Below are positions 12,020 to 53,110 of a stretch of DNA of 64,000 bases, piece after piece. The first letter of the stretch is position 1. Each line of letters opens with the position of its first letter. Position numbers and translations under genes: made by a program. The DNA comes from Takakia lepidozioides (Eukaryota > Plantae > Bryophyta), in NCBI GenBank assembly GCA_030704615.1, contig CM060733.1, forward strand, positions 76,074,001-76,138,000. The letters run 5' to 3'. The notes below the pieces were generated by a model. It was not told the origin of the DNA, ran no database searches, and worked only from the letters and a program-made list of their open reading frames with translations.

Positions 12020-12114
12020 CATTATTATTATTATTATTATTATTTCAAGAACAGGGGACACTGGCTCTGGGTCGAATTTTATTAAGATTATTGAAGATTA
12101 ATTTCTAATAGTAT

Positions 12115-12150
<36 letters not shown>
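12020..12150. repeat. (TTA)n and (TAA)n microsatellites in a very AT-rich block (~11300-12800)
   Basis: Directly visible trinucleotide runs. Confidence 0.9.
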
Positions 12151-12151
<1 letters not shown>

Positions 12152-12881: not shown

Positions 12882-13088
12882 CTAAACAAAATGCGAGTCC
12901 GACGCAAGAGTACCTGAAAGAGCATCAAGCAGACCCAGAGGGCCAGATGGACCCATAATAGCCAAAATTTGGCCAGGCTTACATACCCCGTAGCATAGAG
13001 AAGCACTCCCTAGAGCAATTCCCCGGGTTGCATGTACTTCGTCATACCCGGAGCCATTCCAATTAGTCTCCTCCTGATCAATGCCCAT
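12882..13088 (-). pseudogene. ABCG (WBC) half-transporter N-terminal fragment with broken Walker A
   Basis: GVCKPGQILAIMGPSG-PLGLLDALSGTLAS matches the ABCG pattern G..PG.I.AIMGPSGSGKSTLLDALAGRL, but GKST is lost. No downstream exons were recognised. Confidence 0.65.
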
Positions 13089-28047: not shown

Positions 28048-29789
28048 GAATGAATATATATATATATATTGCTGTATTTTGAGATCTGTGGGAGATTCCA
28101 CTATCTTTTCTGTGGGACATTATAAAATGCCATTTCATTTCATTTCATTTGTTAGGTATTTGTGGTAATGGTACTGTTTGGTCTGTTCCATTTCCCTTGT
28201 ATTCCATCCATCTGGTTCTCTGGTGACTCGTCCTAAACTAACTGTGCTTCTAGACTTGCAGATATCTACGTTGATATATTTTTGCAGTTTTTACAATGAA
28301 GACCTCATTAAGCTCCCCTGAAGGTAATTTTAGGATCTTTGGGATCCAGGGAGATTCCCTATCCAGGGGTATTTTGTATATTTTTATTTTTAATTGTTTT
28401 TGGTGCTTCATTTTGAATTGTTAAATACGGATAAATAGTCATTGAAGAAGCTTTGATTAAATTGACCCCATTTAAAGCTAGACATTGGAGTTTTAAAGGG
28501 CTTTTGCCGTTCCTAAGGGGTTGACCCGAAGCACCCAGGAAATGGAGGGGTAGTGGGAAGAGGTCTCCCCTCTTCTTCCCTAAACTCGATAGGTGCTTTG
28601 TGAAGGGGCAAAAAAAAAAACCAAGTCCCAGCTATTAATGCTTCAGGGGTTTAGGCTAGTAGGAATTAGTAAATAATCAAGACTTTGAATGAAATTACAA
28701 GACTAAAAACACATAAAAATACCGTAGGAATTAGGAACGCAAATTGTCTTGTGAGGGAGAAAGTTAAATTCTTCTTTGCCGGTAGGGATTAGTTATTACA
28801 TAGAAACTGCCACTAACATGCCAAGGATCCCTTGCAGTGTGGATGGTTCTTGAGCCCAACCCATTCCGCTACACACCTCGACCCCTCCTAGCTAGTATGT
28901 CATCACCCTGGCCGCGGCGCCCAGGGCTCGTCAGATTCGATGGTGATTCGTATCGGCACGATAGAGACAACTTTTCCATACCTTGTTATATCTGTGGCAC
29001 TTACATTTGTTTCTGCCACTCCATTTGTAGGAGCATCTTCGTCTGCAGAGTCCAGTCCCAAGTCTCCAACGACTACAATGTGGGGAGAAGATGTTGCCGG
29101 TCGAAGAGTCTGACTGTGGTGACGCAATGTGGCACATTGAACAGACTCCCCAATGATCAAGATTCGGATGTTCCGCTCTCAGGGCGACCACATTTGTGAA
29201 ATGCACCTCTAAAATTTCAAAAGGCACTGACGGAACTCCTGCACCGACATACACAACCCTATTTTAACTAATTCTGGACTTTTGGCTTAAATCTGGACCA
29301 AACTTAATATGTATTTGAATTAAAATTAATCCAAATTTTGTTAATAATATCTTGGATAGTAATGTGTGATTGAACTTTGTGAAATTACAAGTGATGTCAT
29401 ACTTGCTTCAAAATGTAACATATAAGATGTCCATTTGACATTGAAGTGCTTGTGAAGTTGTAGTGTAACTCAACACTTCATTGAACGTCGACTGGGAAGT
29501 CGAATGATGTAATATTACATTATGTTACAATCACGATAAACAAATGTGTCGAATCGAACATGGGATAGACTCATAGTACTCTACCATACTTGATATAAGT
29601 TGATAGTAATTTTGATTGAATTTTCATGTTGACAAGCACAATATTCATAGACAATGCCATTGGAATGATGTTTTGGGTGTGAGAAGGGTAGTAAAACATT
29701 AAAATAGCGTGAACATTAGGAAGATTAGGGCAATAAAATAAGGTTTGGGGTGTAACTAGATATATTAAATGCAATAAGGTCCAAGTTTG

Positions 29790-30850
29790 TGGTGACTCAA
29801 AGAAGGGTTAGGTTTAGGGTTTTAAAGGGTTTAGGATAGAGAGAGAGAGAAACAAATATGGACGACTCTTAACCTCTGTAGAATGTAAAAATGTAAGGGG
29901 AATTTGATATCCATGTAATCATTCTATCATACGTTATCCAACTTGAAAATTAAAGAAAACATTAAGAGAATGATACAAATTTTACAAGAGGTAACATGGT
30001 AGACAACAATAAGGTTTGGAGTTTATTATAAGTAGGGTACTACACTAAGGTTTTTGGTATATGCTAAAAGTAATGGTTTAGGGTGCTAAGGGTTACGCTT
30101 AAGCTTGGGGTAAGGATTATTAAGGGAAGGGTAAAGGGAAGGGTAAGGGTTTAGGGTTTGAATTTAGGGTAGAAAGGGACAAACAAATATAGAAGACTCA
30201 CACATGGTAATACAATAACTTGGTTTGGAGTGTAAGTACGGTAGTTACACACTAACCTGGTTTTTGGTATATTATGGTAAGAGTACTAATGGTTTAGGGA
30301 GGTAAGTGTCAGGCTTAAGCTTAGGGTAAGGATTAAGACCAGGGTAAAGAATTATAGGTAGTAAGGATGGGTTTAGGAGTAGTTGGATTTAGGAGGTAGT
30401 TAAGGGCAAAGGGAAACAAATATAGAAGACTCACATTGGTAGTACAATAACTTGGTTTGGAGGTTTGGTAAGTAGGGTAGTATAGTAGGGTAGGAACAAC
30501 TAATATGGTTTTGGTAAGGGTACATAATGGGTTAAGGTGAGTAGTAAGTGGTATTTTAGAAATTGTAGGTAAGATTAGGGTGGTAAGGATTAGGAGTAAG
30601 GTAGTTGTAAGGGTTTTGTTGAGGGTTTGGATATATAGTGGAAGTACACAAAGGTTTTTGGTATATGGTAAGAGGAATAGTGCTAGGGTAGGTTATGTGC
30701 TAGGCGTAAAAAGAGTGGAAGGGTTAAGGAAAAGGGGTTATGTGATTTTAGGGTTAGGGTAATAACTTATTATGTAAAAAAATGGTAAGGATAGAGAGGT
30801 TTGATGGTAAAGGATTTAGGTTAAATGGACAAACAAATATAGAAGACTCG
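29790..30850 (+). repeat. Degenerate telomere-like (TTTAGGG/TTAGGG/TAAGGG) G-rich tract with a longer-period repeat AAACAAATATAGAAGACTC (x4)
   Basis: For example GGTTTAGGG at ~29810, GGGTTTAGGGTTTGAATTTAGGG at ~30146; anchor motif at ~29850, 30181, 30415 and 30831. Confidence 0.75.
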
Positions 30851-31269
30851 CACTCACTGCAATGAGACATTGCAAAAAAACATTTAGACCGGATTGAAAG
30901 AAAGAAGACAAGAATCCAGGGGTAGTGCCAAGAATTATTATTTTTTTTTTGTGCATTGTCTGTTTTGTAAGCAGAATCCCCCATGTCACGAATATATGTA
31001 GATGAAAAGAATGTATAGATGCAAAAGAGAATCGCAGTGCAGATTCACGGCAGAAAAAAAAAAAAGATGAACGTCCACTGCCCACTCGAGGTTCATTGCG
31101 ACAGAAAAAAAAAGACAAGAAGGATCACCCAAAGCAAAAACGAAGGGAAAGAAGCGTAAATAAATTTTTATATCTTAAATGAAAGACCGGAAAAGGAAAG
31201 GAAATAATAACTCAACATTTAGTCCAGGGATGAAAAGGAAAATGTTCGCGCAGAAGGAAACCTTCAGGT

Positions 31270-34200
31270 ATCTGGCTGAAGGATAGCAACCTCCAAAATT
31301 CGCGCGCCGCCTTCACTGCTTTCCACCGCTGTAATTCTCTTGGTGCTATTTCTTGTCGTATTTTTTCGTGGCAGCATTGTCCACACGACATTGTTCACGT
31401 GGATCCATTGAGCAGGATCTGACAGGTTGTACTCCCAAACTTTTGACCGACAGTCCCTGTACCTCTCAAAGTCTGAGAGGGTAACCTCATTTCTTCGGTC
31501 TCCACCACTCCACCTTCACTTTCTTAAAATTAGGATCTTCTCTTTCTCGGATGACATCTGAAATTGCCATTCCCATCCAGACCGGGCACGGCGTTGGGTC
31601 ATGAGGGCGAACGAGCACAAAAAACCCTTTTCTCAATATCCTTGAACGGATTCAAGGGTATCCTTGGACGCTCACACCTAGGGCCACAGTAAGGTTCTGG
31701 AACTTCATCCTCATCTTCCATATCTTCCTAGGGCCACAGTGGCTGGGTTCTGGAACTTCATCCTCATCTTCCATATCTTCCAGTATCTGTGGCTGGATGC
31801 CATCCCTCCGATGGTTTGAGGACCACTTCCACATCTTGACGCTGGAGTTTGTAGGAAGCCACTCCGAATCAGTAGCTGACTTCTTGTACTCCATAACGGG
31901 CCAGCCATCCGCATCTTTAAAAAATCAAAATACGTGCATCTCTGAGATCCCGACCAAAGCCTCTTTTCCATCATGAATACAACCCTTAACAAACTTCTTG
32001 AAGTCGGGAACCTCCTGTGTGATTTGAGGAATGAATTGCATATCTTGGGAGATCATGAATGACCTCATCAAATCCGGAAGAATGTAGGTGTTGCGTTCCT
32101 TTAGCTTCTTCGAGAGATAAGGAATCCGTCAATATCTTCATGGGTGTGCCCGACCATGAGAAAACCAAGCTGGATCTCTTCAAAGACATCTTTGGTAGTG
32201 AGGAGGGATAAGAAAGCAAGCATCCATCTGTTCTTATTGTCCTTGGAGGAGTTGTCCATCTGCAAATAAAGTCGTCTAGGAAGTGGTCGAGCACCACGTT
32301 TATCGTGCGGCCTGCAGGGTTTCAGAGCCTCCAAACATCTCGATTTACCTCTCATGAGCGTTTCAAAAAAATCATTTTGAACTTCAGTGTCGAAAATGTT
32401 CATGGATTCCCGGCATGTCGGCTTTTCCAGTTGGCGCAGGCACCGAGCCAGCGACCCAATTGTGAAGTTTGAATTGCTTTTCCAGAACTCAAGGGAAAAT
32501 TGAGCGTAAGCTCCATCTCCGTGTCCGTGCGTAACCATTCCTGTCAATGAGACAGGCAACCGACCCAATCCGGAGACCATCTTATTCGTCGTCTGTAGCC
32601 TCGGAATAGCCGTTTTCCTATGATCCATCTTATCATAAATAATACATAGGAACTCCTCCGGAACCATAACGGACTCATTCCTCCAGCTATGGTACAGCCT
32701 TCTGCAAGACTCTTGATATCTCAAGTGCAAATCAAGCGCCTGCTTATGTGCGACCTGTTCGGAACTCCTCTTAATCGACTTCTTGATCAAGTCCTTGAAC
32801 ATCTCGCATTCTGTGCACTTAGCAAAGGTGCTTCCTGTTTTCTCCTGTTAGGAAATATTCGATTCCGTATACGGCTTATAGCTAGCTGCGAGACTCCTTT
32901 CAAATCGAGCAGTCTGTTTGTCTGCACCCCAACTCCCCAACAATGTCAACGTCCACTGGGCAGTGGAGGTTCTACAAAGTGGAAGAACAAGAAATCATGA
33001 TGGCATAAAAAAGAATAAAATCATCCACAGTATTTTGAAAAACGAAAGGGACAACGAAAAAAGTCACCTCGTTGGACTCCTCTCGAATTCTCTTCCAGTT
33101 CATTTCAGGTGGCAAAATTCTCAAAGTATCCCGACGTCCCTCTCCAATGCAACGTGTTTTGTGAAGCATAAGGTCAGTATTGGCATTGATAATGGATATA
33201 ATGTTCCCCTCTGCCTGGAGTGTCCCTGGTCACGGCCGCTTGACGCCACGATTTCCGTGGAAAGATGACAAACAACCCTCTTTACTGAGCTTTTGTACTC
33301 TATGTACGTTGACCTTCCAATTCCGTGTATTATCCACCATGCTTTCTCACAAACATCAACACCTTCTATCGTAACATACGACCTGCGTGATGACCCATCC
33401 ATAATGTGAAGTCGTTTTGAAACATTCAATCCAAGTTCTCTCCTCTCATCGAATGACGAACCCCAAAATGCAGTACAAATTGCCAAGGTTTTTCTCCAAT
33501 CAAAATACTGGCAGCACTGAAGCTTGCAGCAAGGTTTGCTGCTCACCGACCTCACTTCATCCAAAGTAAGATTTTTCTTGCACTTTTTTTAGTCCTCCAT
33601 ATTGGATGGATTTTTCTTCCTAGTAAAATGTCTGTATGTTGCTTTCAATACGCCTGTACCATGGTCGTCATTCTCCATGTCACTGCATGATCGTAGGAAA
33701 TTTTCGAGATCAACGGAGAGTATCCGGCCATTTTCAATAAGTCTTGTTTTTGTTAACGGCCATTTCACAATAGACATCAGTGAACCGGACTCTCCAGAGA
33801 TTGTTCTGGTGACCAGAACCCCATCATCGTCCTCTCCGAGTTTGTCATTCAGAATGATCTCGTTAGGAATGCGTGCCTGAATTCGGCCTTCAAACAGGGC
33901 GTTTCCGTCCTCCCCAAGAAGAAGACACTGCAAGTTTCTCCAACATTCTCTCCCCAGACCTGCAGGCAGATCCCCCCCAGTCTCATCGTTGGACGGAATA
34001 TCATTGCTTTCAGTGCTTTGTCCTTGATAATCACTACCTTCTGTGATGGAATGACATTCTGGGTTTCTCGGGGATGATGAATCCACAGTTTCATGCGTGC
34101 GAACACAGGACACGTCCCACACAACTGGAGTCCCAATTGCCTCCTTCAATGTGTCAGCATCCATGTGTCGATAAGGCAGAGGACATGAGCCAAATGCGTC

Positions 34201-34356
34201 ATCACAAAAGATCGGGGTAACTGAAATGGTGGACGAACACAAGTGGTGTCCGTGGCAAGTTCCATCCCCAGAAACATTCAGGCAATCTCCTGAGGCAACA
34301 ACTGAAGGAGATCCAGGAAGCGACAAAAACACCCTTTGGCCTACTTGGAACCCCAT
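31270..34356 (-). pseudogene. Sola1-like (DUF7869-type) DDD transposase, spliced, with frameshifts
   Basis: Pieces 33589-34356, 33121-33564 (CCKLQCC, VCEKAW), 32972-33169 and 32101-32802 with IIYDKMD, LYLQMDNSSKDNKN and FLMVGHTHEDID catalytic motifs. Intron at ~32923-33067. Confidence 0.8.
32948..32971. promoter_or_regulatory. 24-bp palindrome copy (AACGTCCACTGGGCAGTGGAGGTT) in transposase intron
   Basis: Member of the element-wide AACCTCCACT-N4-AGTGGAGGTT family; function inferred. Confidence 0.6.
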
Positions 34357-34365
34357 GAAGTTAGT

Positions 34366-34651
34366 AACCTCCACCGGGCAGTGGAGGTCCAGTAAAATCC
34401 TATTACTGAAGATTAACTGAAGGAAAGAATGTCTTGCCACCGAAAGGAGAAACTTTAAGTATAACTTTTTCGACGGTTTTGAATGAGAAAACAATATGGA
34501 TTGAAAAAGTAAAGTCAATGTTTGGATCTACACTGGGACTGATAAAAAACAATTGGAATTAAATTGGAGTATGAGGGCGGAGTATAGACTACATCTATCG
34601 GAACTATCAGATGAAGTCACAATTGCCAACCTCCACTGGGCAGTGGAGGTT
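34366..34651. promoter_or_regulatory. Two 24-bp palindrome copies (34366-34389, 34628-34651) just upstream of the transposase ATG
   Basis: AACCTCCACCGGGCAGTGGAGGTC and AACCTCCACTGGGCAGTGGAGGTT; the first is about 10 bp from the probable start codon at 34356. Confidence 0.6.
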
Positions 34652-36944
34652 GGATGATATCTGTTGATGAAATAAACCACATGGATCAACAATGGATAAT
34701 GAAGAAGCCCTCTGTAGATGACAAAGTGATTCTATGGATGGATGAATAATAATGTGGCGACTGCCCTGTGGAGGTTTGGGAGTAACTTTAGACAAACAAA
34801 AGCAAGTTTAGCTGGTGTACATGGAGAGTACACAAAAAATTGAGTATCATACTATCCTACGTGAGAAATGTGCAGTTGACACCTGAGACTAAGGAAGCAA
34901 GGAGAGACTCAGAGGCTGCTTCAGAAGTACCCTATGGGCAGAGTGGTGTAGGACAGGCAAAGAGGTACACGTTGTCCAGAGAGGTGCATGAGAGAAAAGA
35001 AGCAAGTGAGAGGTTCAAAGTGGAAAGTTGGTGTTGTGTGGATTCGGACGTTATATAGAGGTGACATGTAACTTTCATCTTTGAATCGCTCCAATGGCAG
35101 TGTGGTATGATGCTTTCTCTCCTGGATTGATTGTGGCCACCGTGGATTAAGGCGGAATCGAACGGCTTATTTCAACTCATGAAATCTCGGCTTCATTGAA
35201 AGTGTGCACAATTTTCCATTTATTGACAGCAGCCATTGTCACATTAATTATGGAACAAACGATAACGGCCGCGATCAGACTGAATTCTATCGTACTTGTA
35301 CGTTAGTAGGACTAGAAGTCTGGCATCATTATCATGCGGCTCTGACAGCAGACTCTGGAATAAGTGTGAAGGATGTCGATTCTGACAAGTGGCCTGGAGA
35401 AATGAAGTCAGGCGGCTAATCGCCACAACTAATTCGAGACTCCACATTAACAATCGATCATTATAATTAGCTGGGAGGAATCCGGAGGTGAACCATAAAG
35501 CACTTTGAGATTGTTCTGTTTATATTTATCGTGCTGTTACAGTTGTAAGCGTGTGGGTTGCAGAGTCTGACCAATGGCGTCATTACAATCATTTCGTCCT
35601 TTTTTCATTCGTCTATCCAGTCGTCTGTCCAAACGTGTGTGCATTCGTGGAACAAAAGTTGAACTAATTTCATCTGTGTGGATGGACAGTATTAATGTTA
35701 GTTTGCGTGGATGGGGCAGAACATCCATTTGGGCCGCGCGACCGTTCGATTGCGGACGGAGGCGATGGTTCAGATCATCCTTGACGGTCGCTTATAAGGG
35801 GTGCGCTCTTTGAGCCCGGCCTTTGGGCTTCCCATTTTCTACGCGTAAGCGCTGCGCGAGTGAGAGCTTAACAGTTGAGAGAGGAGAGCGTGAAATAGAA
35901 GAGTTTTGGAGCTCGTTTTGCAGCGACTGGACACTGAAGCGTGGAGAGAAAGAGCAGACTTGGCCGAGTGCAGAGAGAGGAGAGGGTGAAAGGCGAGAGA
36001 GTGAAATAGGCAAAATTTGAAGAGCGGGGAGGAGAGACCGGACAGTGGCGAGTGGAGATTGATGAGTGTAGAGGCGAGAGCATAATGCAATTACCGGCAG
36101 GCGGAGGTGCGGAAGAGAGTATCAAACGAAGGACTGTGGTTGTAGGGCCACCAAAATGGCCGGCACAAGCAGGTGCAGCATTAAAAACTCCCTCTCTTCG
36201 TCTTCTGTTTCACGTTTTGTGTTGGCCTGTTCTGAATTCATGTGTTGGCCTGTTCTCAGTTTTGTGTTGGCCCGCTCTCGATTCATGTGGCCTGTTCAAG
36301 ATTCAATTCGTTTCGATCCTGCTTCATTCTTTGCTGCACTGCACTGTCTTCAGTGCTTCAGTCCGTGCTTTAGTGCACATTAGGTTTCTGTTTCATTGTT
36401 TGCTTTGTTGTTTGCTTCAATGCTATTTCATTCTCTGTCAATTCATTTCACTCCTGCTCTATTCTGTGCTTCAGTGCATTCTTGAGTCATTGCTTCACTG
36501 TTGTTTTTCAATTCACCGATGGTTTGTAGGGTGGTTTTGTGTGGTGGTTTTGTGTGCAATTGGGTTTGTGTGTGCTTGTTCTGGTTGATTAGGGTAATGG
36601 TTTAGGGTGGCGGGAGATTATCATGCTGGTTGTATTGCTTGTTTTGTTCATTGTGGTGGTTTATTGAAGACAGTGGTTTCGGAAATGCCCGGATGTTTAT
36701 TTCTCAACCATTTTCTTGATCCCCAAATCCAGCGTTAGTTGATGCATTTCTTCCCATTCAAATTCAATTCTGAATGGAAATTTTCATTTCTTATCCAATT
36801 ATGTCGAATTCGGCAATTCTGAAAAGCCATGATAGCCTAGTCTACTTGTATTCTACAGTAGACATATGCTAACATTAGACTTCGTGCAGGCCAGAGTAGA
36901 GTATTCGTAGACCCATGTCATGCACATGAGCAACCAGAAACTGG

Positions 36945-37169
36945 AACCTCCACTGCCTAGTGGAGGTTCGCGTGAATTCTGTATGCGGAAGCTGAAGGCA
37001 TTTTTTTAAAGTAAGGACGAAATCGGATAATTACGGGAAAATTGAAATCAGTTTGAGATGATGTGGGAACGAGTGATGGAATCATATGTGTAACATTGTA
37101 AGTGTGACACATACTTTCCAACAAAACTGGGATACGATAATTGGGAACCTCCACTACCCAGTGGAGGTT
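36945..37169. promoter_or_regulatory. Two 24-bp palindrome copies (36945-36968, 37146-37169) upstream of the cargo ORFs
   Basis: AACCTCCACTGCCTAGTGGAGGTT and AACCTCCACTACCCAGTGGAGGTT. Confidence 0.6.
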
Positions 37170-37318
37170 CGATATTTCTTTGGGTCAGCCAGTTACACAC
37201 TCTGATTAGTTTTTATGTCAGAATGAGAAAGAGGAACGAGGGTGGGGAACTGGTGTCTGACGATGAGTACAAGACAGCCAGATTAAATTGAAGCAAGAGA
37301 CGGTGTTCGGTAGACGGG

Positions 37319-37876
37319 ATGGAAGCGGACCGTCCAGATCAAAAACATGGTGTTTCGGAACCAAATGAAAAATCCAGTTGGGGGTCTACCGAGCCAAACA
37401 AAGTGTCTATCAATGACAAAAATGTGACTATAGAACCCCCGCGGAATGCATCCGAATCTCCAAGCGATACACCTGAAGTCATCTGTAAGGATACCCTGGC
37501 AGAAATAAGAGAAAGCGTTCATGTAAACAATGATATCAACGGATCTCCTGCCTACTCCCAAGATTATCCGACATACACCCCTTCAGACTATTCCCCAGAC
37601 ACATTGGCGGCGATACGAGTGACCGTTTTTGGATATCCAGCATCTCCGGGTTACTCGCCAGCATCTCCTGAATCCACATCAGGATCTGAAGGATATTATC
37701 CTCCAAACTTCCTCCTGGACACTGAAACAAGCGGGGGAGTCCTGGAACTACTGGACGTCTCCGGATCTCCAGGATACTCCCCTGCGTCTCCTGATAGTAT
37801 CACCGGATCCCCAAAATATACCCCTCCAGACTATTCGTCTGATACACTCAAAGAGATAAGAAGGAGCATTCTGTAG
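37319..37876 (+). CDS. S/P/Y-rich protein with RNA polymerase II CTD-like heptads
   Basis: SPGYSPASP twice, plus SPAYS, YTPSDYSP and SPKYTPP; DTLxxIRxxV/I repeated three times. Confidence 0.55.
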   Translation: MEADRPDQKHGVSEPNEKSSWGSTEPNKVSINDKNVTIEPPRNASESPSDTPEVICKDTLAEIRESVHVNNDINGSPAYSQDYPTYTPSDYSPDTLAAIRVTVFGYPASPGYSPASPESTSGSEGYYPPNFLLDTETSGGVLELLDVSGSPGYSPASPDSITGSPKYTPPDYSSDTLKEIRRSIL

Positions 37877-38197
37877 TTCTTGGGTATATAATCTAGAATC
37901 GTCTGAATATAATGCGAGAAGTTCCTTAGTATATTTTGGACGAATTAGGTTCGAAGATTTCTATTGTAGATTAGTCCTGTTTAAGGATGATGTACTCAAT
38001 GGCTCCTGAGCCTCATTTTCATTAAAGTTTTTTTCTTCAACATCTGAAAAAAATGGAGGATTTCCCATTTCATGTAGAAAGACTCGTACATACAAACCTC
38101 CACTGTCCAGTGGAGGTTCTCATTTCTGGAATGATGGATGCTAGTAAGAGAGATCCTGTTATTGATTATCTAATAAATTTGTGTTTGGTTGTAACAG

Positions 38198-38668
38198 AAG
38201 ACATCCTACACCATCAGATTGCGTCCCGGGATTGATTGGAGATATTTGTGGGCATTCGTATGCCGGAAGTCCTCACATTTCAAAACTAAGCATACCGCTA
38301 TTTTTGAGCTTAACCCAGAGGTGACAGATTGGGGCATCGTGCCTGTCGGTACACCTCCTGATCACAAACTGTCTTTTCATTACAGAAGTCTTGCAGTAAT
38401 AACAAACTTAAAATACGCAGAAGCTCTCGATATAGAGTTTGAATCTGAAGAGGAAAACCCGATGTTGGTTTTGTTCCTGCATGAGGATGCGAGAACCCCC
38501 AGGACGTTTGGTTTCAAAGTGGAGGTGGGTCATCTGAACAAGTCGTTGATGAGTGAATGCGTTGCACTGGGTTTTAGATTTCCAGACGAGGACTCTGTAT
38601 TTACAGACGTAGGTTTGTCGAGGGCCTGGAGTATTTTTTCTGGATCTTCTGCACACAATGGGGAATGA
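38198..38668 (+). CDS. Uncharacterised cargo ORF/exon (149+ aa)
   Basis: Open frame with globular-protein composition after a TAACAG acceptor; no family recognised. Confidence 0.45.
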   Translation, partial: KTSYTIRLRPGIDWRYLWAFVCRKSSHFKTKHTAIFELNPEVTDWGIVPVGTPPDHKLSFHYRSLAVITNLKYAEALDIEFESEEENPMLVLFLHEDARTPRTFGFKVEVGHLNKSLMSECVALGFRFPDEDSVFTDVGLSRAWSIFSGSSAHNGE

Positions 38669-38904
38669 CATTCGCAAGAAACGAGCACTAGAGGAAGCAT
38701 CAAAGCTGAAGAGGGGAAAACGCAAAGTCGTCGACAGCCGGCAATGATGACAATGAGGCCGGGACTTCCGCAGGAAAGTAGAAACAGAAGGAGGATCAGG
38801 ATCCAACATTGATGTCAGATAACAAGAGACCTAAAGCTGGGGAGATTTTTGACAAGGAAAAATGCGAGAAGATGGAGGAGAGTCTCACGGAGGAATAAAA
38901 TGAT

Positions 38905-41789
38905 GTATTTCCATTCAGATTCGAGAGTACCTTCCTTGTGAAGGTTTCCATGATGGAACTAGCTCCAAGGAGCATGGTTTACAGGCCGTTAAATATCAAG
39001 CATAAGGACGAAGTGAAAGCGCGACTCTTCCAACTTCATTTGTTCGACTCCAAACGTCCAGTGTATCTTGCGCCAATCAACCCTTCCAATCCTGAGAAGA
39101 TTGCTTCATCGCGACCGAAGCAACGGAAGGAGATGGACGTATCAAGGTTCTTCGTAATTGGTGGACAACACACCATCGTGGCAGCAAAGGTAATGGACTT
39201 CATTTCCTCCCAGACCTCTCTTTTAACGAACCTCCACTGGGCAATGGAGGTTGGTGTTGAACTACAAAATTGGATATATCCCCACACTTTCAACTCTCTC
39301 ACCCATTTTACATTAACTATAGCAGGAACTTCTCGAGGATCTTTCCGACAGCGAACTGAAGGAGGACTACCGGGAGTGGCCTGCGAAGATTGTATGGTCT
39401 ACCGATGAACAATGGCTCCTGAAGTTGTCAAAGCTCCTCAACGATCCCAATAAGGTGCAAAAGTTTGATACAACAATGCCGGAGAAAGTTGCGCATGCGC
39501 GAATGTTATTCAACCTGAGGGGGAAGCCAAAGAAATACAACGATCACACCACAAAGTCCGAGACAAAACAATGGAAGGTATGCATTTATGGAATCAAAAT
39601 CTACTATTCACATTCATTTTATGCTAAAGAATACTTCTGTTGTCGGAGTGACAACTAATTTATCCCTGAATGAATGTGCAGGAGTTCATGTTTGTCTGTC
39701 ATTTGATACTAGAAATGGGTAGCATTAAGGAGGCAATGGTCTTGATACTTTGCAACGACGACGTTTGGAAGATCTAGGAAGATGTTTTCAAAAACTGGGA
39801 GCAGGGAAAGCTACTCGACCCGCTTGGGATACAGTACAAGGGTGAACAACAACAGCTCACGAAATCTGCTATCGCAAAGCTGCAAGGGTTGAACAGATGG
39901 CAGCTGATAAAAGTTGCGCAGAAAATCCTGGACCTGAAATTGACCATTCGAGATTACAAAGGTCAAGACAAATCAATTCAAGGCATGAACAAATACATAG
40001 ACGACATGAAAATGCGCCGGTTTATTGTCGGCGATGTGATGGAAGTGTTGGGGTGGCCTCGGAGGAGCAAATAGTGCACGGAACCGTACACTAAGGACGA
40101 GTGGCGTGAAGTGAAGAGAAAGTACCACTTCAATAAGGCAGAGTTCTCAACATTTAAAGACAAACTGGGGACGGATTACATCCAAAGCAAGATCAAGATG
40201 AACATGGAGACAAAACCACTCACGGCCGCTTTTGTTAAGTACGTCTCCTCCATCAAGAAAGCTTATGAGGATAGAGAGGATGCCATGGCGATTATTTCAG
40301 CGAGTTTCAAGACTCATTACGCTATCATGGGTGGAGAAACAAAATTCGCCGATGCCAAGTCTCGTCTGCGACTCGCACCGAAGAAACGGTTTGACAACAT
40401 AGCGATGGTGTTCGTCAATACAGTTTCTGAAGACGACTCTGTCGTATTTGAGTCCAACGATTATGTGAACATACTGGAGGCCTTTGTGGCTCAGAAAATG
40501 AACACGAGTGTTTTTGTTTTCTTCTCGACGCAACCGTCCTCGGCCAATCTGGTCTCCTACATCCGAAATGGTCCCGGAAGAACATCGTAGCTTGTCCGTC
40601 AGGGATTTTATGTTCGGGGAGAGTATGAAAATATTACAAAAACAACACGAAGACTTTCTCTCGGACTGTACTGTGCCTGGACTATGTTTTTCCAGCGACA
40701 CCTGAGGAGATGCAGAATCCGGACGAGCACATCTCCACCGTACTGTTAATCGAGCCAATACAGCCGATTCTGGAATGGCCCTCTGAGAAGCCATCAGCTT
40801 TTGAAGAAGAGTGCAAGACTTATAATCATAAGCTACAAGCTGACACATACGACTATTTGGCCTCCCTGTTTTGTCAAGATGGGATGTCCGCTGTCAACAT
40901 CTTCGGAGGCGTGATGTTGACGTACGCCCTTCATGTAAGTGTAAAACCTTTTTGCATTTTAAATACAAATTTTACATTTTTGATCCACCGCATCCTCTGT
41001 TTTACTGACTGGGTTTATCTGCAGGCAAGAAACATTCGAGTGCTTGAGATCAACCACTCAACCAAGAAAAAGTTTTGCAAAGGAAAAGTTGATAATTTTA
41101 AGAAGCTTCAAATTGAGAATGACAATGTTGCTGAAGAGGTTGACGGCGGAGACGATGATGAGGATGAGGAGGAGGAAGATGAAGACTTGGAAGAAGGAGG
41201 CGGACATTCCGAACACGTAGAGGAGGACGAGGTCATCGATGGTAATGGGGACAACGAGGGCCACGATGGTGACAATGCAGACCGTTCGGAGGATGGACAC
41301 CTGGATGTGATTCAAGACTTCAGAACTCAGTCACATGATGGTATTGAGAACATCACCCAAGACATTGTGGTCCACAATGTCGTGATTCTGGATGGGGATT
41401 CGTCGAGTTCAAGCGAGAGAACTAAGAGTAATCCTGCTTCACCATCAAGGGGTGCGGAGGCGAGCTCAATCGAGGTGCGCGGCAATTTGATTGGGAGTGC
41501 AGACGATTGGTTCAAATCTGTAGAAGGGGACGAGCCAGCGCCAATGTCCCCGTCTCCCGCGAAAGAGAGGGTAGAGAGAGTGAGGACAAAGAGCCCGTGT
41601 CCCACAAAAGACAGTGGACACAGAGGGAGGACTAAGAGCCCGTCCCCCGCAAAAATGGACAGTGGTGACAGAGGCAGGACTAAAAGCCCGTCTCCAAGAA
41701 AAAACAGCGGAGGCAGAGGCCGAACTCAGAGCCCAACTTGCTCTCAAAGTGTCTCCCAGCATGTCAATTTGGATGTAGATAACGAATGA
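38905..41789 (+). pseudogene. ParB/Srx-like domain fused to a degenerate beta-class amino (N6A/N4C) methyltransferase-like region, with acidic and RxRTKSPSP tail
   Basis: YRPLN...FFVIGGQHTIVAAK (ParB-like GxHR signature). GT-AG introns at ~39190-39323, 39578-39681 and 40935-41023. C-terminal FDNIAMVFVNT (position of DPPY) and LASLFCQDGMSAVNIFGG..ARNIRVLEIN (motif I/II-like). In-frame TAG stops. Confidence 0.5.
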
Positions 41790-42285
41790 CACCTGGAGAT
41801 TTATGGTATCTTCAAGCATTATAAATGGAACAAATTGTGTGTATTACATCTGGTTGTGTTCTGGTTGTGTTTTTGGCAATACCTGATCTGTATCTTAATA
41901 TTTCCCACATTCTTGAACTTTACATGTGACTAACGGTAAGAAAACTCGTATAGATCCATGAACGGAAATTGGAGGAAATCACACAAACCCGGACAGAATC
42001 CATCGCGACTCAAACAGTGAGGAGGCAGGTGGACTTAACAATAAGGGCCAGCCCAACTGATCCGGTCAAACAAACAACCTCCACTACACAGTCGACGTTG
42101 CGAGATGGAGGAGATGAGCCTGAGATGGTCGTTGCTCACCGTGAAGGAAAAGAGAGCGAGCAGCACCATCAGCAAATTCGGAACCCCTCCCCGAAACGGG
42201 TATACACCTCATAACCATCTTAGCTATGTTCTTCTTTGTCCTTCTTCTAGTTTTCAAAATAAATTAATTGTTCTGTTATTCCACA

Positions 42286-43024
42286 GGATGATATGATTCA
42301 CCCTCCAATCGACTATCACAAATCTGTGAACCCACAGGATTGGTATCGCCTCTCTGAGGGACCGAAAGGATCTCGACCAGGATACTACGTACTGGTTCTT
42401 GACGTCGGTTACCTTGGTGAGGTTTATATCCGAGATGGTCCGAGATCCCCTCCCGCAACCCATCCTTGTATGTGCGCTAGAAAATTCAAGCTTGCAGTCC
42501 GAAATGGGTTGGACGACTTCCTGAAATAGGTCCTTAAGCATTTTGAGGTCTACTTTTGGAACACTGGACCGTTAGAAAATGTCCTGGATATAGGGCTGGC
42601 TTTGTTTGGAAGAAGGTTTTACAAGGTCAGGGAATTCAGCAATGAGAACTGCGTGAAGCATAGACAGACGTTCAGTGCCGACTGGCCCAAATATCCGAAA
42701 GCGCCAATATATCTTAAACGTCTCTACGACCTTTTCACTGTAGACGACCCTGTAGCGTACAAATCAAACACACTTCTTATCGACACTGTAGAAAATATGT
42801 ATAAGTCTTACTTGAACCCAAAGTCGCTCGGTATCTTCCTTCCAAAATATAAAGCGCTCGTCGACCCATACAAGGACAGGTTTCTTCTTGATGAACTCAA
42901 ACCGCACCTGGAAGAGTTGCGGTTATCCGGAAAAGACGTTGATATATTCAACGTGGAAAAACCCATAGGATGTCCACCGTATAATGACCCAAAGGTCAAA
43001 TGCCTCTTGCTATGGGATTTGTAG
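42286..43024 (+). pseudogene. FCP1/NIF-family HAD phosphatase domain 1
   Basis: YVLVLDVG...RNGLDDFLK*VLKHFEVYFWNT...YLKRLYDLF...NTLLIDT...NPKS; one in-frame TAG at 42527. Confidence 0.7.
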
Positions 43025-43203
43025 TGGCAGGTTTATCTTAGAAAACAAAAATTTCCTGACGCTTCATTGGAACAGTTTGAAACGTAGATGGCTGCTCTAG
43101 ATTTTCATGAACCTTGACTGTCCAGTGGACGTTTCTCCCAATGTCAATCCTGTCCTTGGTTTATCTTGATTACCACCTGAGTGGATGTATGAATTTCTCA
43201 CAG

Positions 43204-43830
43204 ATTGCAGCACCAGTTTCTCCAGTTGCGAAATGATTGCGCTTGATAATTTTTGACCTGAATGGAGTTTTGTGCAAAGTGTTGAAGCACCAGAAGAGCT
43301 AATGTGTCCCCCGAATGTCCGAGACAGACTACATGATACCAGCTCTTGTTGGATTTCGACTTGTCTATAGGCTGGAAAAATATCGTGAGATGTGGACAGA
43401 GTTGAACAAACATTTCCGTCTAGGTATATGGAGCTGCATGATGTACAAGAACTTGCAGCCTATACTGGACTTTATGCTTCGGGGTCTTCCTCAGCCGGCA
43501 TTCGTTATGTCTCAGGAAGATTGTATCTCATGTCCTACTTTCTGTCCACCCTCAATTTATATCAGGATACGACCCGCCGAGTCTGTTCTTGAAGCCATTG
43601 ATGACGGTCTGGCAAAGATTTGGTGGTCAGTACAACCTGAGTTACACTCTACTTATTGACGATTCAGCTATTAAGTGTGTGTTGAACCTGCCTGAATCCT
43701 GCCTGATTCTAAAATCGTTTGAATCTGTTGAGACGGACTCTTGCTATCTCCAGAAGGTTCTTTAGAAATATTTGCTTGGAATGAAGAAATCTCACACGGT
43801 TTCCAGTTATCTCAGGGAAAAGAGGATATG
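43204..43830 (+). pseudogene. FCP1/NIF-family HAD phosphatase domain 2
   Basis: LIIFDLNGVLCK...KHFRLGIWSCMM...TLLIDDSAIKCVLN; stops and frameshifts. Confidence 0.75.
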
Positions 43831-44449
43831 ACTTAAGCCTTGTCAGAATGTTTCCACCGATCCCAAGTTTAAGCCTCTCCTGGATTATGTTGATGATTCT
43901 AATTACGGGAATCTCCGATATGATGCTTCAAAATAAAGATTTTATTGATCAACCACGTCTGTGATTCAATGTTTATTTTTTATTGGTTTTTTTTATAGGT
44001 TGTATTGTTTTTCTAGAAAAACTGTTGTGTACTGTGATTTTCTTTTCAATCTGAATTGACATGGAATTGTTTGCTATTTCCTAGTCTCATCCAAGCGTTT
44101 CCCCACCCCATACCATCCCGATCCTCTAAGATACAGGCCTTCTCCGAAACTCGTCTCGGGGGCTTTTTCAAATCCGACAACCTCCACTGTGCAGTGGAGG
44201 TTATCCCGTGTCTGTACATTGACCTTGTAAGTTCGTTTCTACAGGTTCATGGCGATGCTGCTGATGCCAACTTCTTGTCGGGACCTCCATTGGAATCCTC
44301 CATATCAGAAATTCGTCTACAGAGGGACAACATTCACACTACTGTTGAGATTTCTATCATCGACGATGAAGCATCATCCAGGCACTTGGCTTCCCTAGGA
44401 TAACTTTGTCTCTCATCCTTTACATGCAACAGCGGGGAAGAGGAAACGG

Positions 44450-45266
44450 ATGTTGTTAATTTTGAGTGTCAACGGACTCCTCTGCTACCGGCCACCCCCA
44501 ACCGGTGGTGAACTGTTTAAGGAGAAATTTCGTTTCAGGAATGTGACATTTCAAGTTCCTGACAGACCGTTTGTGGTGCCTCGGCCTGGAGTCTTGGAGT
44601 TTATGGACCTTGCATTGAAGCATTTTCACGTGGCCATTTGGTCATGTGCTGATAGAGGTGTTCTTTGTATGATGTTGGAGAGCTTCGTCCCCACGAAAAT
44701 AGCGAAGAAGTTTTGCTTCATACGGTCTGTTGAGGATTGTAAAGATACCACCGGTTATATCAGGCCCGGGATGACATATCTCGTGAAGGATATTCGAAGT
44801 GTTATTGTCAGGTACCCTGGTAGACTGTTTGCTACGCAGGGGCAAATACTTCTTGTAGATGATGAGCCATCAAAAGGCCTACGAAACCCACAAAATACTG
44901 GATTCTTCCCTTTCTCATTCAAGCCTTCACCAAACGGATTGCATGACAGGGATGATAACAAAAGCAGTGTGGCCATATATATCGGAGATGGCTGGAGCTT
45001 CAATAGTCGTTGATTACATTAACGAGAACCGGGCAAAGTGTTCTCATAAGCCTATTGGTCGAAACCATGCCTGCTGGGCCTGGTATAGAAGATATCTTGA
45101 TCCTCGTATTTGGATCCCACAACAAAAAGAACCTGATTACCTTGGTAGGCATGTGGATCCCACTCTTCTCTTGTTTGTTCATAATTTGATTTTCCAATTC
45201 TTTTGCAGCTGCATTTGCACTCTTACCTCAACATATCCATATGCAAAACTTCCACTTTGGGCCTAA
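44450..45266 (+). pseudogene. FCP1/NIF-family HAD phosphatase domain 3
   Basis: LLILSVNGLLC...RPGVLEFMDLALKHFHVAIWSCA...LVKDI...ILLVDDEPSKGLRNPQNT; frameshift near 44960. Confidence 0.8.
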
Positions 45267-47006
45267 CATTTGTCATTTCCATCGCCTCTCCCCAGTTACA
45301 TTCAAGGAACGAATACTAAAAGAGGAACAAGAGCTGCGTGATTGGGAAGAATGGCGGGCGTGTCGGGAGGCTTCAAGGACATCAAGTAGAGTTGGCAGTA
45401 ACATTTCAGATGACAATGTCAGCCGGTTTCACCTTCCTGAAAGTATCTCCGTGTCCTCTGGAGCGGAGACCGTTGCAAGTGGTTGTGGTAATCGGAGGCA
45501 TGCCTTGACTGCAAGCCGTTTGGGAGGAGACTCAATATTATTAATGAGTTAGTATAAGCCGTAACGGTTCTATGCCTTCAGAATCAATGGCTTGTATGGC
45601 ATTAAGTCCATGAACGGATGGACAGTTGACATTCATTTTTCTGTTGGTCCATCGCCTTGAATGATATAATCTCAAATAAAATATGAATGTTTCATATCAT
45701 CAATCAGGTCCCGACAGACTCGTTTTTCCATGTTGTCCTCTTCATCACATGCCATCATTGTTTCATATTTGGTTCTGCCATTATTCCATGTTTGTTTCTG
45801 GATGTCATTTTGGATATCGGAGCTCTCATCATTGTTTGATTCATTGCATCATCCCATTCCTTTTAATGAACGTCAACTTGGCAGTGGATGTTCATCTAAG
45901 ATACATACTTGTATTTTTGCGTAGAATGTGTGGAGGATTACATAATTTGTTGTTATATAGTGCACAAATAGTCAAATAATTATAGATATATCTCTTTATT
46001 TCTATTATAGATTATAATTATTCATATACCTTGTATTATTTCTGGACCAAACAAAAGTCCAGAATTAGTTAAAATAGTGTTACACTAGTTTGTTCAAACC
46101 ATTCATAGCGCGGGCGTCTAAGCCTCACAAGTTTTGGTTCTGCCCTGATGACATTGCACATTGTGTGATGGGGAGTTTTCGTGAATCGGTGATAATAAAT
46201 CCCCAAATTCTTGTTGTCTGGCCAGTGAAGGTGGGAACGTCACTCTCCAAATAGGAGATTGAGATGCTGGAGGATGCTGGAGGATGCTGGGTTTTGCCTT
46301 CCAAGAGGCCCAACTGTGCAACTTACACCCATGTCTTCAATGTCTTTGCCTTCCACATTTCTTGCACGTCCTCCAGTTGGCAATGATTGGCCCACAAAAA
46401 TGAATAGAAAACAGGTCCCTCGGGTTGAGCCAGGTGTAGATCATGAGTTCAAGGTGGAGTGACTCTGCTAGAACTCTGCGGTGTCGAGTGACCCAAATTA
46501 TTAATGTCCCCCCTCTAGGCTATGGGCGGGTGTACACAATGGTGACCTCTAGATCTATTGTTCATGGTAGGACCTATGATATTACAATTGGAATTGCACT
46601 TGCCCGGACTTTCAAAGCATGCTTTTGAGCTCTCTTGGGAAGAGAGGCAGGTTTGTCCCGTGCAAGCATGTATACTATATCTACCTTCAGAATTTTGCGA
46701 TCCTAAACGAGACAAGTACATTCACCAATGTACGCTAGGTTACAGTGAGGTTCCACTACAACAGAAATAAGGATTTGTAACTGGGATTTGTGACTATTTT
46801 CTGGTCATAAGTCCCTTATGACTAATAGTCATGTAACCCCTTAGTCGTAGAGCAACTGTAGTCACGTTCATGGGCAAGCCATTCAATTGGCCTGAGCCGA
46901 AAGACGTATATAGGACGGAGTAGACCATAGTCTCGTAGATATGAGATTTGTGGCGGTACAATGGTTCTTTTATGAAGACATAATTCAATTTTGATCGTGC
47001 ATGTAA

Positions 47007-48634: not shown

Positions 48635-49945
48635 CCCCACTCATTCAATGGGCGATTGAATGGTTGCCCATTCAAATGATTTTCGTTTGCTTTCAATCTT
48701 TGCCACTATGTTCAACATACCATGTATCAGGTCCCCGACTAATATAAGATCAATCAAAATTCATTCGATGGCTCAACGGATGGTTGGCCATCGAAATGAT
48801 TTTGGTTCGCTTTGAGGCTTGGCACTATGTTCAATGTGCCATATAAGAGGCCCTAGAGTAATATGAGATCAACCGAATTTCGTTCAATGGGCCAACGGAT
48901 GGTTGCCCATCCAAATGATTTTCGTTCGCTTTGAGACTTGGCCAGTGTGTTTAGTGTACCCTCTTATACATCCCAATGTAATACAAGATCAATCGAAATT
49001 CGTTCGATTGTCCAATGAGGCGTTCACTTGTCATCTGGTTTTTGTTCAATGCGAAAAAGAATTCCTGCAATGCGTGCACGGCTATTGCACCCATTGAACG
49101 GATGTGGTTGAAGCCCCTCTTTTGTCCCCATGTGCTGGAACATGTGTGTGATACATGTGCGGAGACACATTAGACAAATAAATCATTCGCCTCCCCATCG
49201 ACGCGCTCACCCCTCAAGCCATTCCACAATTTAATTGAATTTAAATTTATTTTAAGCCAATAAATAGGTTTGTAGTGCCTTTCATTGGGGGCGCAAAAAT
49301 TTGGACCAATAAAAAATGCCCCCAAAAAAAAGTGTTCCGTCTCCCTCACTATTGTAGAACTCTCTATGAAGAGTGCATGAAATTGAACACAAATCAAGTT
49401 TGGAGTGCAAAACAAGGAAGAAAACTGTGGTTTTGGATCCAAATGAATTATGTTCGCTCCCAAATTTGGCACGCGCGTTGCATATGGCTACATTACACTC
49501 CCTATTCAAAAACGGAATGAAAAAAAAATCGTGAGCATGCAAAACACAGTCCAACAGGTCCCAAAGCAATAGCAGATCCAACGGAATATATTCAACGGGT
49601 GAACGGATGGTTGCCCATCCAAATCATTTTTGTTTGCTTCCAAACTTTGCCAGTACGTTTGAGACACCCTCTCACAGGTCCCCGACTAATATGAGATCAA
49701 TCGAAATTCATTCGATGGCTCAACGGATGGTTGGCCATCGAAATGATTTTGGTTCGTTTTGAGACTTGGCCACTATGTTCAATGTACCATGTAAGAGGCC
49801 CGAGAGTAATATGAGATCAATCGAGCTTCGTTCAATGGGCCAACGGATGGTTGCCCATCCAAATGATTTTCGTTCGCTTTGAAACTTGGCAAGTGTGTTC
49901 ATTGTACCCTATGATACGTCCCAGTGTAATATGAGATCAATCGAA
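48635..49945. repeat. ~123-bp tandem repeat in two blocks (48635-49020, 49590-49945), each unit containing a small hairpin
   Basis: Recurring ATGGGCCAACGGATGGTTGCCCATCCAAATGATTTTCGTTCGCTTTGA and AATATGAGATCAATCGAA. Confidence 0.88.
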
Positions 49946-51376
49946 ATGTTTTGAGAACTTTGTGGGTATGTTCGGAGAAAGATCATAGATTTTGCGAAAT
50001 GATTATGAAATACGCAGGGTCTAAGCGAAATTTAATGTTTGGAAGACGACCGTTCGTAACTCGTTATAACTTATTGGTTTACATCAATTTTCCTTGTTCT
50101 CCAGCTTTCGGAGTTCATTGCAAATACCCACATACACGTCATGACCAAATATGACACGATTGTAAATTTGTTTACAGGGTAAACCACTTCTTCCCTAGCA
50201 CACGAGTGTAAATGTGAAGAAAACGCTGCTCATGCAATTGAAATTGGCAGGTGCCGTACATGTGCATTGTGTATTAACAAAATTGGTGATATACAAAAAT
50301 GACGGAATGCTATTACTGTGTTTTCCAACAATATTCAAGGTACAACAAAAATGCACATTGTATATGTACTACGCTGCCAGTCGTTACAAGCCTAGTCGTC
50401 ACTGTCTGAGGACAAGGAATTTGATGCTGTGGCCTGATTTGCACTGTCAATTGCCAGAGCTTGCGACCGTGATCTCGTGGTCAATGAGGGGCCCAATGGC
50501 ATGTGATCAATTCTGGCCTGCATCCGCCTACTTTGCGGCGAAAGTTGACTTTCTTCTTTACTCTCACGATGTGACGGAGGTGGATCGAGAACAAGTGCTC
50601 GGGCTGCATGCAAATCGGCAACGAGGGGCAATAGAGCCCCCGAAACACGATGATAACGATCTGTCCATAGTCGCCTCCATTTCTCTACAACTGCCTTGAT
50701 GGTACTTTTGAAACTTTCCAACTGCCTCTCGCGGGCCCTGTCCCTAATCATTATGTCGTTTCGACGATATGTCGTTTCGACGATAAGTCGTCTCGTACGC
50801 CTCATTCATTCGGCGTTGACATATTATAGCATCTTCCAGTTCGGACAGCAACAAATGTCTCCCAATCGGTTGTAGGTCATACAATTCGTTCTCCTCTGGC
50901 ACCCATAGAACCTGTGGGAGCCGAATAAACCTGGACCTTCTTTGACTCCAATGCCCTCCGAGATTGCGGCAAAACTGCTCTCTCTCCCACCAATCTCGAA
51001 TGTCTCCCGCCAGATTGTAAGCGTGAGCAGATTATTGATGCGGACCCTAAAAGCGAGGGAACAAGTGGGCCTATTGCCGTGGACACAAACTCCACTACAA
51101 CGGCGCAATCTTCTCTCCATCGGACCGAAGACAGATAGAGTCCATGACGACAATGTGGCACAAATGTGCGATGAAAAACTGTCGGATGAATGTATCTATG
51201 ATGAACGTAAAAGGGAATGGATGAACATTGGATGAATGTTGGATGAGTGTCGGATGAAAAATTGCCCAGATGAGTGAACCATAGATGACTGCAACAATAT
51301 GTGCGCAGGGATCCACGTGTTGTTGAGTTTAAATAAGTGTATTTTAATTTGGCAGAAGCTTAAATATTCCGGCCCA

Positions 51377-52976
51377 GAAGACCAGCCAGATCAAGCTGGC
51401 GTCAACGCCACCTTCATCTAGCACCTTCAGAGGGGACAAAACTATATATATATTTATATTTTATATTTTATATTTTTTGTAAAACTTGCAAATGAACCCA
51501 ACCCCTGCTTTGCAAGCAAAAGACCTGGCGTTTACCCAGCATGGATTTCTGGTCACCTGGAATAAGGACATGACAACGAATCATAAGCCAAGCAATTTGT
51601 AAATGTCATTCATCCCAAATAGCACACCAGAAGACCAGCCAGATTAAGGTGTCGACGACACCTTAATCTGGTACATTCGGGGAAAATAAAATAATAATAA
51701 ATTATTATTATTATTATTATTATTTGAAAACTTGCAAATGAACCCAGCCCTTGCTTCGCAACAAAAGACCTGGCGTTTACCCATCATGGATTTTTGGTCA
51801 CCTGGAAGAATGACATAACAACGAATCATAAGCAAAGTAATTTGTAGATGCCATTCACCCCAAATAGCACACCAAAAGACCAGCCAGATTAAGATGTCGT
51901 TGACGACACCTTAATCTGGCACATTCGGGGAAAATAAATATAAATATAAATATTAAATTTTTATTTTTATTTTTATTTTTTGAAAACTTGCAAATGAACC
52001 CAGCCCTTGCTTTGCAACAAAAGACCTGGCATTTACCCAGCATGGATTTTTGGTCACCAGGAAGAAGGACATGACAACGAATCATAAGCCGAGTAATTTG
52101 TAGATGCCATTCATCCCAAATAGCACTCCAAAAGACCAGCCAGACACCTTAATCTGGCACATTCGGGGAAAATAAAATAAATATAAATATTAAAATTTTA
52201 TTTTTATTTTTATTTTTGAAAACTTGCAAATGAACCTAGCCCTTGCTTTGCAACAAAAGACCTTGCATTTACCCAACATGGATTTTTGGTCACCAGGAAG
52301 AAGGACATGACAACGAATCATAAGCCGAGTAATTTGTAGATGCCATTCATCCCAAATAGCACTCCAAAAGACCAGCCAGACACCTTAATCTGGCACATTC
52401 GGGGAAAAATAAAATAATAAAATAATAAAATAATAAAATAATAAAAATTAATAATTAATCGTTAATTGTTTTTATTTTTTTTTTTTTTTGAAAACTTGCA
52501 AATGAACCCAACCCCTGTTTTGCAAGCAAAAGACCTGGCATTTACCCAGCATGGATTTCTGGTCACATGGAAGAAGGACATGACAACGAATCATAAGTTA
52601 TATGGTCCGAGCAATCTGTAGATGTCATTCACCCCAAATAGCACACCCAAAGACCAGCCAGATTAAGGTGGCGTTGACGACACTTTTATTTGGTACATTT
52701 GGGAAAAAATAAAATAAAAAATTATATATATATATATATTGGAAAACTTGCAAATGAACCCAACCCCTGCTTTGCAAGCAAAAGACCGTTAACCGAGTAT
52801 GGATTTCTGGTCACATGGAAGAATGACATGACAACGAATCATAAGTTATGTAGTCCGAGCAATTTGTAGATGCCATTCACCCCAAATAACACACCAGAAG
52901 ACTAGCCAGAGTAAGATAGATTAAGGTGTCATTGAGGACACCTTAATCTGGCACATTCGGGGAAAAATAAAATAAA

Positions 52977-53007
<31 letters not shown>

Positions 53008-53110
53008 TTGAAAAACTTGCAAATGAACCCAACCCCTGCTTTGCAAGCAAAAGACCTGGCGTTTACCCAGCATGGATTTTTGGTCACATGGAAGAAGGAC
53101 ATGACAACAA
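51377..53110. repeat. Seven ~250-bp tandem units with variable AT-rich internal spacers
   Basis: AAGACCAGCCAGA...AAAACTTGCAAATGAACCC...CATGGATTT.TGGTCAC...ATGACAAC at about 51377, 51629, 51875, 52131, 52367, 52649 and 52897. Confidence 0.92.

Follow-up and report, generated by a model that had tools for sequence, protein, structure and literature searches.

A giant Sola1 transposon family in Takakia carries a conserved cargo of ParB-like, methylase-like and phosphatase-family domains

We analyzed a window of 64,000 nucleotides from the land plant Takakia lepidozioides (assembly GCA_030704615.1, contig CM060733.1, forward-strand positions 76,074,001 to 76,138,000; coordinates below count from its first letter) and found that positions 29255-46081 hold a 17-kb element of a multi-copy family of Sola1-type DNA transposons. 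The window copy is non-autonomous and decayed, and the giant cut-and-paste transposon that it represents carries, pointing away from its transposase, a cargo under purifying selection in which a ParB-like part, a methylase-like domain and three phosphatase-family (NIF, PF03031) domains are likely joined in one long spliced gene. By analogy with VANC, the anti-silencing protein of Arabidopsis VANDAL transposons, we favor, at a probability of roughly 55%, a reading in which the encoded accessory protein acts as a self-recognition factor that keeps copies of its own family expressed.

The element is bounded by 30-bp terminal inverted repeats (TIRs) that are complementary at 29 of 30 positions (97%, one mismatch) and by a 4-bp ACAC target-site duplication (TSD) present on both sides, as described in an earlier note made from the sequence; the 4-bp length is read from this one insertion. 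Removing the element together with one TSD leaves an 88-codon open frame on the + strand that spans the junction, and a SWIM finger (46580-46735, E 3e-4) lies ~500 bp downstream. The empty site proposed in the note therefore restores the SWIM-gene frame only locally, because the host gene is itself broken by stops. The left-pointing DDD transposase that the note had recognized is secure: its core (32104-32847) matches Pfam DUF7869 at E 2e-31 and has 167 homologs with identities of up to 61%, and its CxxC, D, QxDNxxxxNKN and VGHTH motifs show little or no variation across the aligned transposases. Compared by eye, the curated Sola1-1_Ec32 transposase of the brown alga Ectocarpus has the same motifs in the same order and Sola2-1_Ec32 lacks them; the published Sola1-1_Ec32 has AACCG termini and a 4-bp TSD, with the moss element Sola1-1_PPa as its best match. 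We file the Takakia element under Sola1 from its TSD, its termini and these visually compared motifs. The transposase gene comprises an N-terminal part (33592-34296) and the core, with an inferred intron at 32922-33067; stops, frameshifts and a duplication of 53 bp (31677-31781) disrupt it. The open reading frame (ORF) at 33592-34527, considered as separate cargo, was rejected, as it is the N-terminal part of the transposase and matches other transposase loci. The features that define the element are:

29251-29254: left target-site duplication ACAC
29255-29284, + strand: left TIR, starting AACCC
29737-30853: subterminal degenerate direct repeats, partly telomere-like, with strong G skew, at the left end only
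31300-34296, - strand: Sola1-type transposase gene, from Pfam DUF7869, homologs and reading frames; 3′ end approximate
46052-46081, - strand: right TIR
46082-46085: right target-site duplication ACAC

Public contigs of the same species aligned to 6 kb of the element in numbers (1,240 and 2,069) and identity classes (every class present) that mark a multi-copy family. In most of these contigs the stops at 38898, 39776 and 40072 are replaced by other letters, and the frameshifts at 40633 and 43539 correspond to indels in many; the cargo breaks that we checked are thus not shared by most copies and belong to the window copy.

The cargo on the + strand was described in the note as a toolkit of several genes, and probably forms a single spliced multi-domain gene instead, running from the ParB-like domain through the third NIF domain:

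37319-37876, + strand: 185-amino-acid Ser/Pro-rich ORF with heptads YSPASPE and YSPASPD and three DTLxxIR repeats
38199-38665, + strand: probable N-terminal exon of the accessory gene
38899-39577, + strand: ParB-like domain with GGQH motif, in two exons (to 39189; from ~39323)
39578-39681, + strand: intron, removed by splicing in a related copy's contig that is probably RNA
39682-40934, + strand: helical linker and amino-methyltransferase-like domain, with three stops and one frameshift here
41025-42199, + strand: acidic and Ser/Pro-repeat linker exons (41025-~41774; 41954-42199, inferred)
42287-43021, + strand: NIF/FCP1-family domain 1, motif I DVGYL
43237-43930, + strand: NIF/FCP1-family domain 2, motif I DLNGV, broken in the window copy
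44435-45266, + strand: NIF/FCP1-family domain 3, motif I SVNGL

A 5,983-nt contig from a run presumed to be RNA, belonging to a relative ~80% identical, skips exactly the predicted intron 39578-39681 and continues for ~4.4 kb beyond it, approximately the length that a spliced transcript through NIF domain 3 would need. A variant at 41779 that is common among copies strengthens a splice donor whose use would fuse the methylase part in frame with the NIF part. The position of the intron inside the ParB-like domain is conserved in homologs. Between the exon at 38199-38665 and its equivalent in other families only a short WGI motif is common, and the pairwise score is not significant.

Confidence in the domain labels differs along the protein. 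The NIF assignment is firm: domain 3 matches Pfam NIF at E 4e-8 (44399-45010), the other two match at E 0.01 (42530-43021) and E 0.03 (43442-43762), and all three align to an intact NIF homolog at E ~1e-6. The note's three FCP1-type phosphatase domains accordingly stand as NIF domains, but not as canonical phosphatases, for the DxDxT motif is absent from every NIF domain of the window and of loci L027, L029, L006 and L003; in the window, motif I reads DLNG, DVGY or SVNG. One NIF domain per family retains D-[LM]-N-G with the nucleophile Asp, and motif II Ser/Thr, motif III Lys and motif IV Asp are largely retained; matches to the Dullard-like and HAD-IIID families fall far under the NCBIfam cut-offs. 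The ParB-like/methyltransferase-like protein of the note survives as a resemblance, and neither label draws a significant database match with the window sequence. The conserved [GS]GQH motif, which follows a hydrophobic strand, is similar to the GxxR box of ParB but has no Arg, and the ParB label, given for this resemblance and by analogy, is weak. The methylase label is likewise weak: the window exon aligns clearly with L027 and marginally with L006, whose own methylase region gives sub-threshold matches to Pfam N6_N4_Mtase (E 0.017), PRK13699 (E 0.05), a plasmid methylase (E 0.2), M.PvuII (E 1.1) and Atlas (0.85), and in the three aligned homologs the DPPY/SPPY catalytic motif is absent and FxGxG is degenerate. 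The ORF that the note likened to the heptads of the RNA polymerase II (Pol II) carboxy-terminal domain (CTD) does contain two such heptads (p 0.0008 versus shuffles), but each is isolated and only 5/7 identical, its Pfam score is below the cut-off, and neither of the other two Sola1 families has such heptads within its fetched range. Because the two heptads form no array and are missing from those families, we read it as a family-specific disordered ORF.

Homologs establish the cargo as a conserved part of a giant Sola1 lineage, as the note had proposed. With exons used as separate queries, the GGQH exon found ten homologs, most of them ending at the same intron. Loci L027+L023 and L029, Sola1 relatives on contigs of another plant (sample ERZ25073694), each carry the GGQH domain, the linker, the methylase-like region and three NIF domains, divergently oriented from a DUF7869 transposase; their linker matches that of the window at E 1e-5, and NIF domain 3 of each plant finds its best match in NIF domain 3 of the other. 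A third Sola1 family, L028+L001, has the GGQH domain and linker, with no NIF domain within the fetched range. An accessory gene on the strand opposite to the transposase, together with element-borne inverted repeats, is shared by the window, L027, L029 and L028. L006 keeps the domain order and the second intron, and has a single NIF domain. Between L027+L023 and L029, the ratio of nonsynonymous to synonymous substitution (dN/dS; Nei-Gojobori, one copy pair) is 0.06-0.24 in each piece of the cargo and 0.08 in the transposase, the synonymous sites of the ParB-like and linker pieces being close to saturation, and we conclude from these sequence comparisons that the cargo is under purifying selection. 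The cassette also appears modular, since at L003 (9971-18548) a ParB-like exon and one NIF domain (motif I DLNRV) lie tail-to-tail with a CACTA transposase (Transposase_21, DUF4218), downstream of long telomere-like inverted arrays. No cargo lay within 10 kb of the related transposases, and it was found at three loci on longer walks; the flanks of L011 and L022 were covered for ~10 kb. TIRs of the other plant's Sola1 elements were not found, and the NIF piece and the methylase region of L006, used as queries, returned no further relatives. Beside the Sola1 element at L027 lies a second, convergent methylase-like gene (1-1857) with more canonical motifs (DPLW; FTKPGDIVLDW), probably the accessory gene of another element.

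Each of the three Sola1 families carries its own unrelated palindrome. In the window this is a 24-bp sequence, AACCTCCACT-n4-AGTGGAGGTT, which the note had seen recurring throughout the element: 12 copies with at most three mismatches lie inside it (0 expected by chance), and a degenerate 13th copy begins at 29484:

29484-45892: 13 dispersed palindromes, starting at 29484, 31070, 32948, 34366, 34628, 36945, 37146, 38095, 39229, 42076, 43110, 44179 and 45869

The copies, all of them internal, sit mostly in introns and intergenic DNA and are evenly spaced, one every 0.2-2.8 kb from end to end. Half-site variants recur at positions 4 and 7 and are never compensated by the other arm, which fits a duplex read by a protein, as a dimer, better than a hairpin; a hairpin or miniature inverted-repeat transposable element origin was rejected for this reason and because flanks are not shared. 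In the family of L027+L023 and L029 the palindrome is a different one of 21 bp, with ~24 copies that lie within introns and in an array ahead of the accessory gene; the family of L028+L001 has 17 copies of a third, 18-bp palindrome. The window palindrome was not found in viral contigs. At L002 (8176-8937), in the other plant's family, that family's palindrome also occurs within the transposase 5′ reading frame, where it is read as a repeated GIGGPPIP peptide.

In the favored reading, the cargo domains would form one long protein that binds the palindromes of its family as a dimer through the ParB-like part, thereby marking copies of the element itself. Lacking canonical catalytic motifs, the methylase-like and NIF domains would act mainly as binding modules, with DNA and phospho-Ser-Pro proteins such as the Pol II tail as possible targets. 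The element would then stay transcribed or escape silencing, as VANC achieves for VANDAL, and dead copies such as that in the window would be served in trans. Several observations weigh against this account. The ParB-like part has no matches in Pfam, PDB, PHROGs, phage or plasmid searches; structure models of the ParB-like and methylase-like parts reach a predicted local distance difference test score of 36-45, and fold searches with them gave no ParB support. The five independent methylase matches of L006 converge on beta-class N4/N6 enzymes, none of them significantly (best E 0.017). The single-gene model draws on splice-site inspection and one contig of a presumed RNA run, no palindrome array was seen at L003 or L006, and the transposase, which likewise varies between families, is an equally good candidate for the protein that reads the palindrome. 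A more specific version, which we offer as a tentative and on balance improbable conjecture, would place in early-diverging land plants an ancient module that hops between superfamilies: three pseudo-phosphatase readers of the phosphorylated CTD would be brought to element DNA by a ParB-like protein that recognizes the palindromes, making a sequence-programmable device that captures or shields Pol II and keeps the element transcribed, with reader and palindrome co-diverging by family.

That the palindromes are instead binding sites for the transposase, serving end pairing or activation and unrelated to the accessory gene, seems unlikely to us, although they occur near both ends, precede the transposase as arrays in L002, L023 and L028, and accompany transposases that themselves differ by family; the available part of a 2026 preprint also reports sequence-specific activation by a Mutator transposase. 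The largest array in both L027 and L029 directly precedes the ParB-like gene, however, and inverted repeats also accompany a ParB-like gene in the red-algal Plavaka elements, whose transposase is unrelated (10.1101/2025.02.11.637652). Binding by the accessory protein may alternatively serve transposition mechanics or self-restraint rather than anti-silencing, for example by compacting a 17-kb element, joining its ends, keeping it from inserting into itself or repressing it. ParB proteins bridge DNA and spread along it, the sites are evenly spread from end to end, and all published carriers are giant elements, yet this proposal leaves three selected phosphatase-family domains and a methylase-like fold unexplained, and we think it rather improbable.

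Active enzymes with unusual motifs are a still more doubtful explanation. The protein would write its own N4-methylcytosine or N6-methyladenine mark, or the Asp-retaining NIF domain would dephosphorylate the Pol II tail or a host defense protein; the one D-[LM]-N-G motif per family and the largely retained motifs II-IV are compatible with this, as is the methylase prediction for the Ectocarpus protein in the accessible part of its report (PMC12477816). Against it, the three aligned homologs have no DPPY-type motif, and none of the NIF domains seen has the second Asp of DxDxT. Pack-type capture, in which pieces of host genes are picked up at random, or the nesting of a separate element, either of which the note had said would undo its proposal, would account for a window copy full of stops and frameshifts, but we give this next to no credence. 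The breaks checked are not common to most copies, gene order and introns are conserved across genomes, and no internal TIR/TSD pair was found among the longest inverted repeats examined; the dN/dS of 0.06-0.24 together with the conserved order refutes Pack-type capture.

The note knew of no description of the combination, and the literature does not support its being undescribed. In the part of the report by Dinatale et al. 2025 (PMC12477816) available to us, the 21.5-kb Ectocarpus element Sola1-1_Ec32 has an opposite-strand gene for a 1104-amino-acid ParB and N4/N6-methyltransferase protein; this protein, whose methylase is predicted to be active, was proposed to bind the element that encodes it and to modify it. 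The Takakia element shares with it the giant Sola1 scale, AACC termini, 4-bp TSD, transposase motif layout and an opposite-strand ParB-like/methylase-like gene, and differs in its 30-bp TIRs (282 bp in the brown alga), its land-plant host and its degenerate methylase motifs. NIF domains, a CTD-like ORF and palindromes are present in Takakia and not reported for Sola1-1_Ec32 in that material, the accessory proteins being compared by description. The core design was thus already published for Ectocarpus, and, as far as the accessible text extends, what is new is the occurrence in land plants, the tail of three pseudo-phosphatase domains and a palindrome particular to each family. In the red alga Bostrychia, Plavaka (EnSpm) elements of 17-19 kb have accessory genes PAG2/PAG3 with ParB-like and N6-methylase domains, and inverted-repeat arrays beside the ParB-like gene, in a cassette that moves between transposon superfamilies (10.1101/2025.02.11.637652). 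The 17-kb scale, the paired ParB-like and methylase-like domains, and the inverted repeats recur in Takakia, and related cassettes likewise occur on more than one superfamily, whereas the Plavaka transposase is different, its ParB and methylase lie in separate genes fused to 2-oxoglutarate oxygenase and SET domains, and it has no NIF domain. Arabidopsis VANDAL combines an accessory anti-silencing protein, VANC, of demonstrated function with family-specific motifs in non-coding parts (PMC5735166). The Takakia family resembles it in having an accessory gene and family-specific motifs mainly in non-coding DNA, with arrays upstream of genes; VANDAL differs in its Mutator-type transposase and in VANC targets that lie in tandem repeats, and homology of the accessory protein to VANC was neither found nor expected. 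FCP1/SCP (NIF) CTD phosphatases share with the cargo the Pfam NIF match and largely retained HAD motifs II-IV, and differ in that the cargo lacks DxDxT and has three tandem copies in one transposon gene. The literature searched, which included few subscription journals, yielded nothing further on land-plant cases, on DUF7869 or on FCP1 domains as accessory genes of transposons, and contained no triple NIF domains or family-specific palindromes.

VANC is the sole tested transposon self-recognition system named in the literature read, and the ParB-methylase class was proposed from algal sequences; the Takakia family extends that class to land plants and adds phosphatase-family domains under selection. 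With the two other Sola1 families it provides three natural protein-palindrome pairs, which open specificity to direct cross-binding comparison. If the favored reading is correct, it would show how giant DNA transposons are maintained in plant genomes that carry DNA methylation, and would provide a source of sequence-specific chromatin-targeting proteins.

Further observations concern related loci and the remainder of the window. On metagenome contig L020 (4600-17593), a Sola1 transposase of the cluster closest to that of the window (~61% identical) gives way at ~8540 to a cell-division gene cluster of bacterial type (mraZ, mraW, ftsI, mur, mraY), probably through chimeric assembly or, less probably, through insertion in a bacterium. 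L023 has a 1.1-kb inverted duplication of the transposase 3′ part (11056-14125). In the other plant's family a conserved ORF of ~95 amino acids lies between transposase and accessory gene (L023, 7139-7429; L002, 7248-7526, - strand) and has no match among the window ORFs. At 6035-6410 the window contains a tandem array of ~51-bp units with GGTCGCAC/GTGCGACC inverted motifs, possibly the palindrome array of another element. Degenerate tandem repeats of 119-120 bp, together with tandem repeats of 236-256 bp, occupy 48641-49947 and 51444-53108, and 120-bp repeats also occur at L003.

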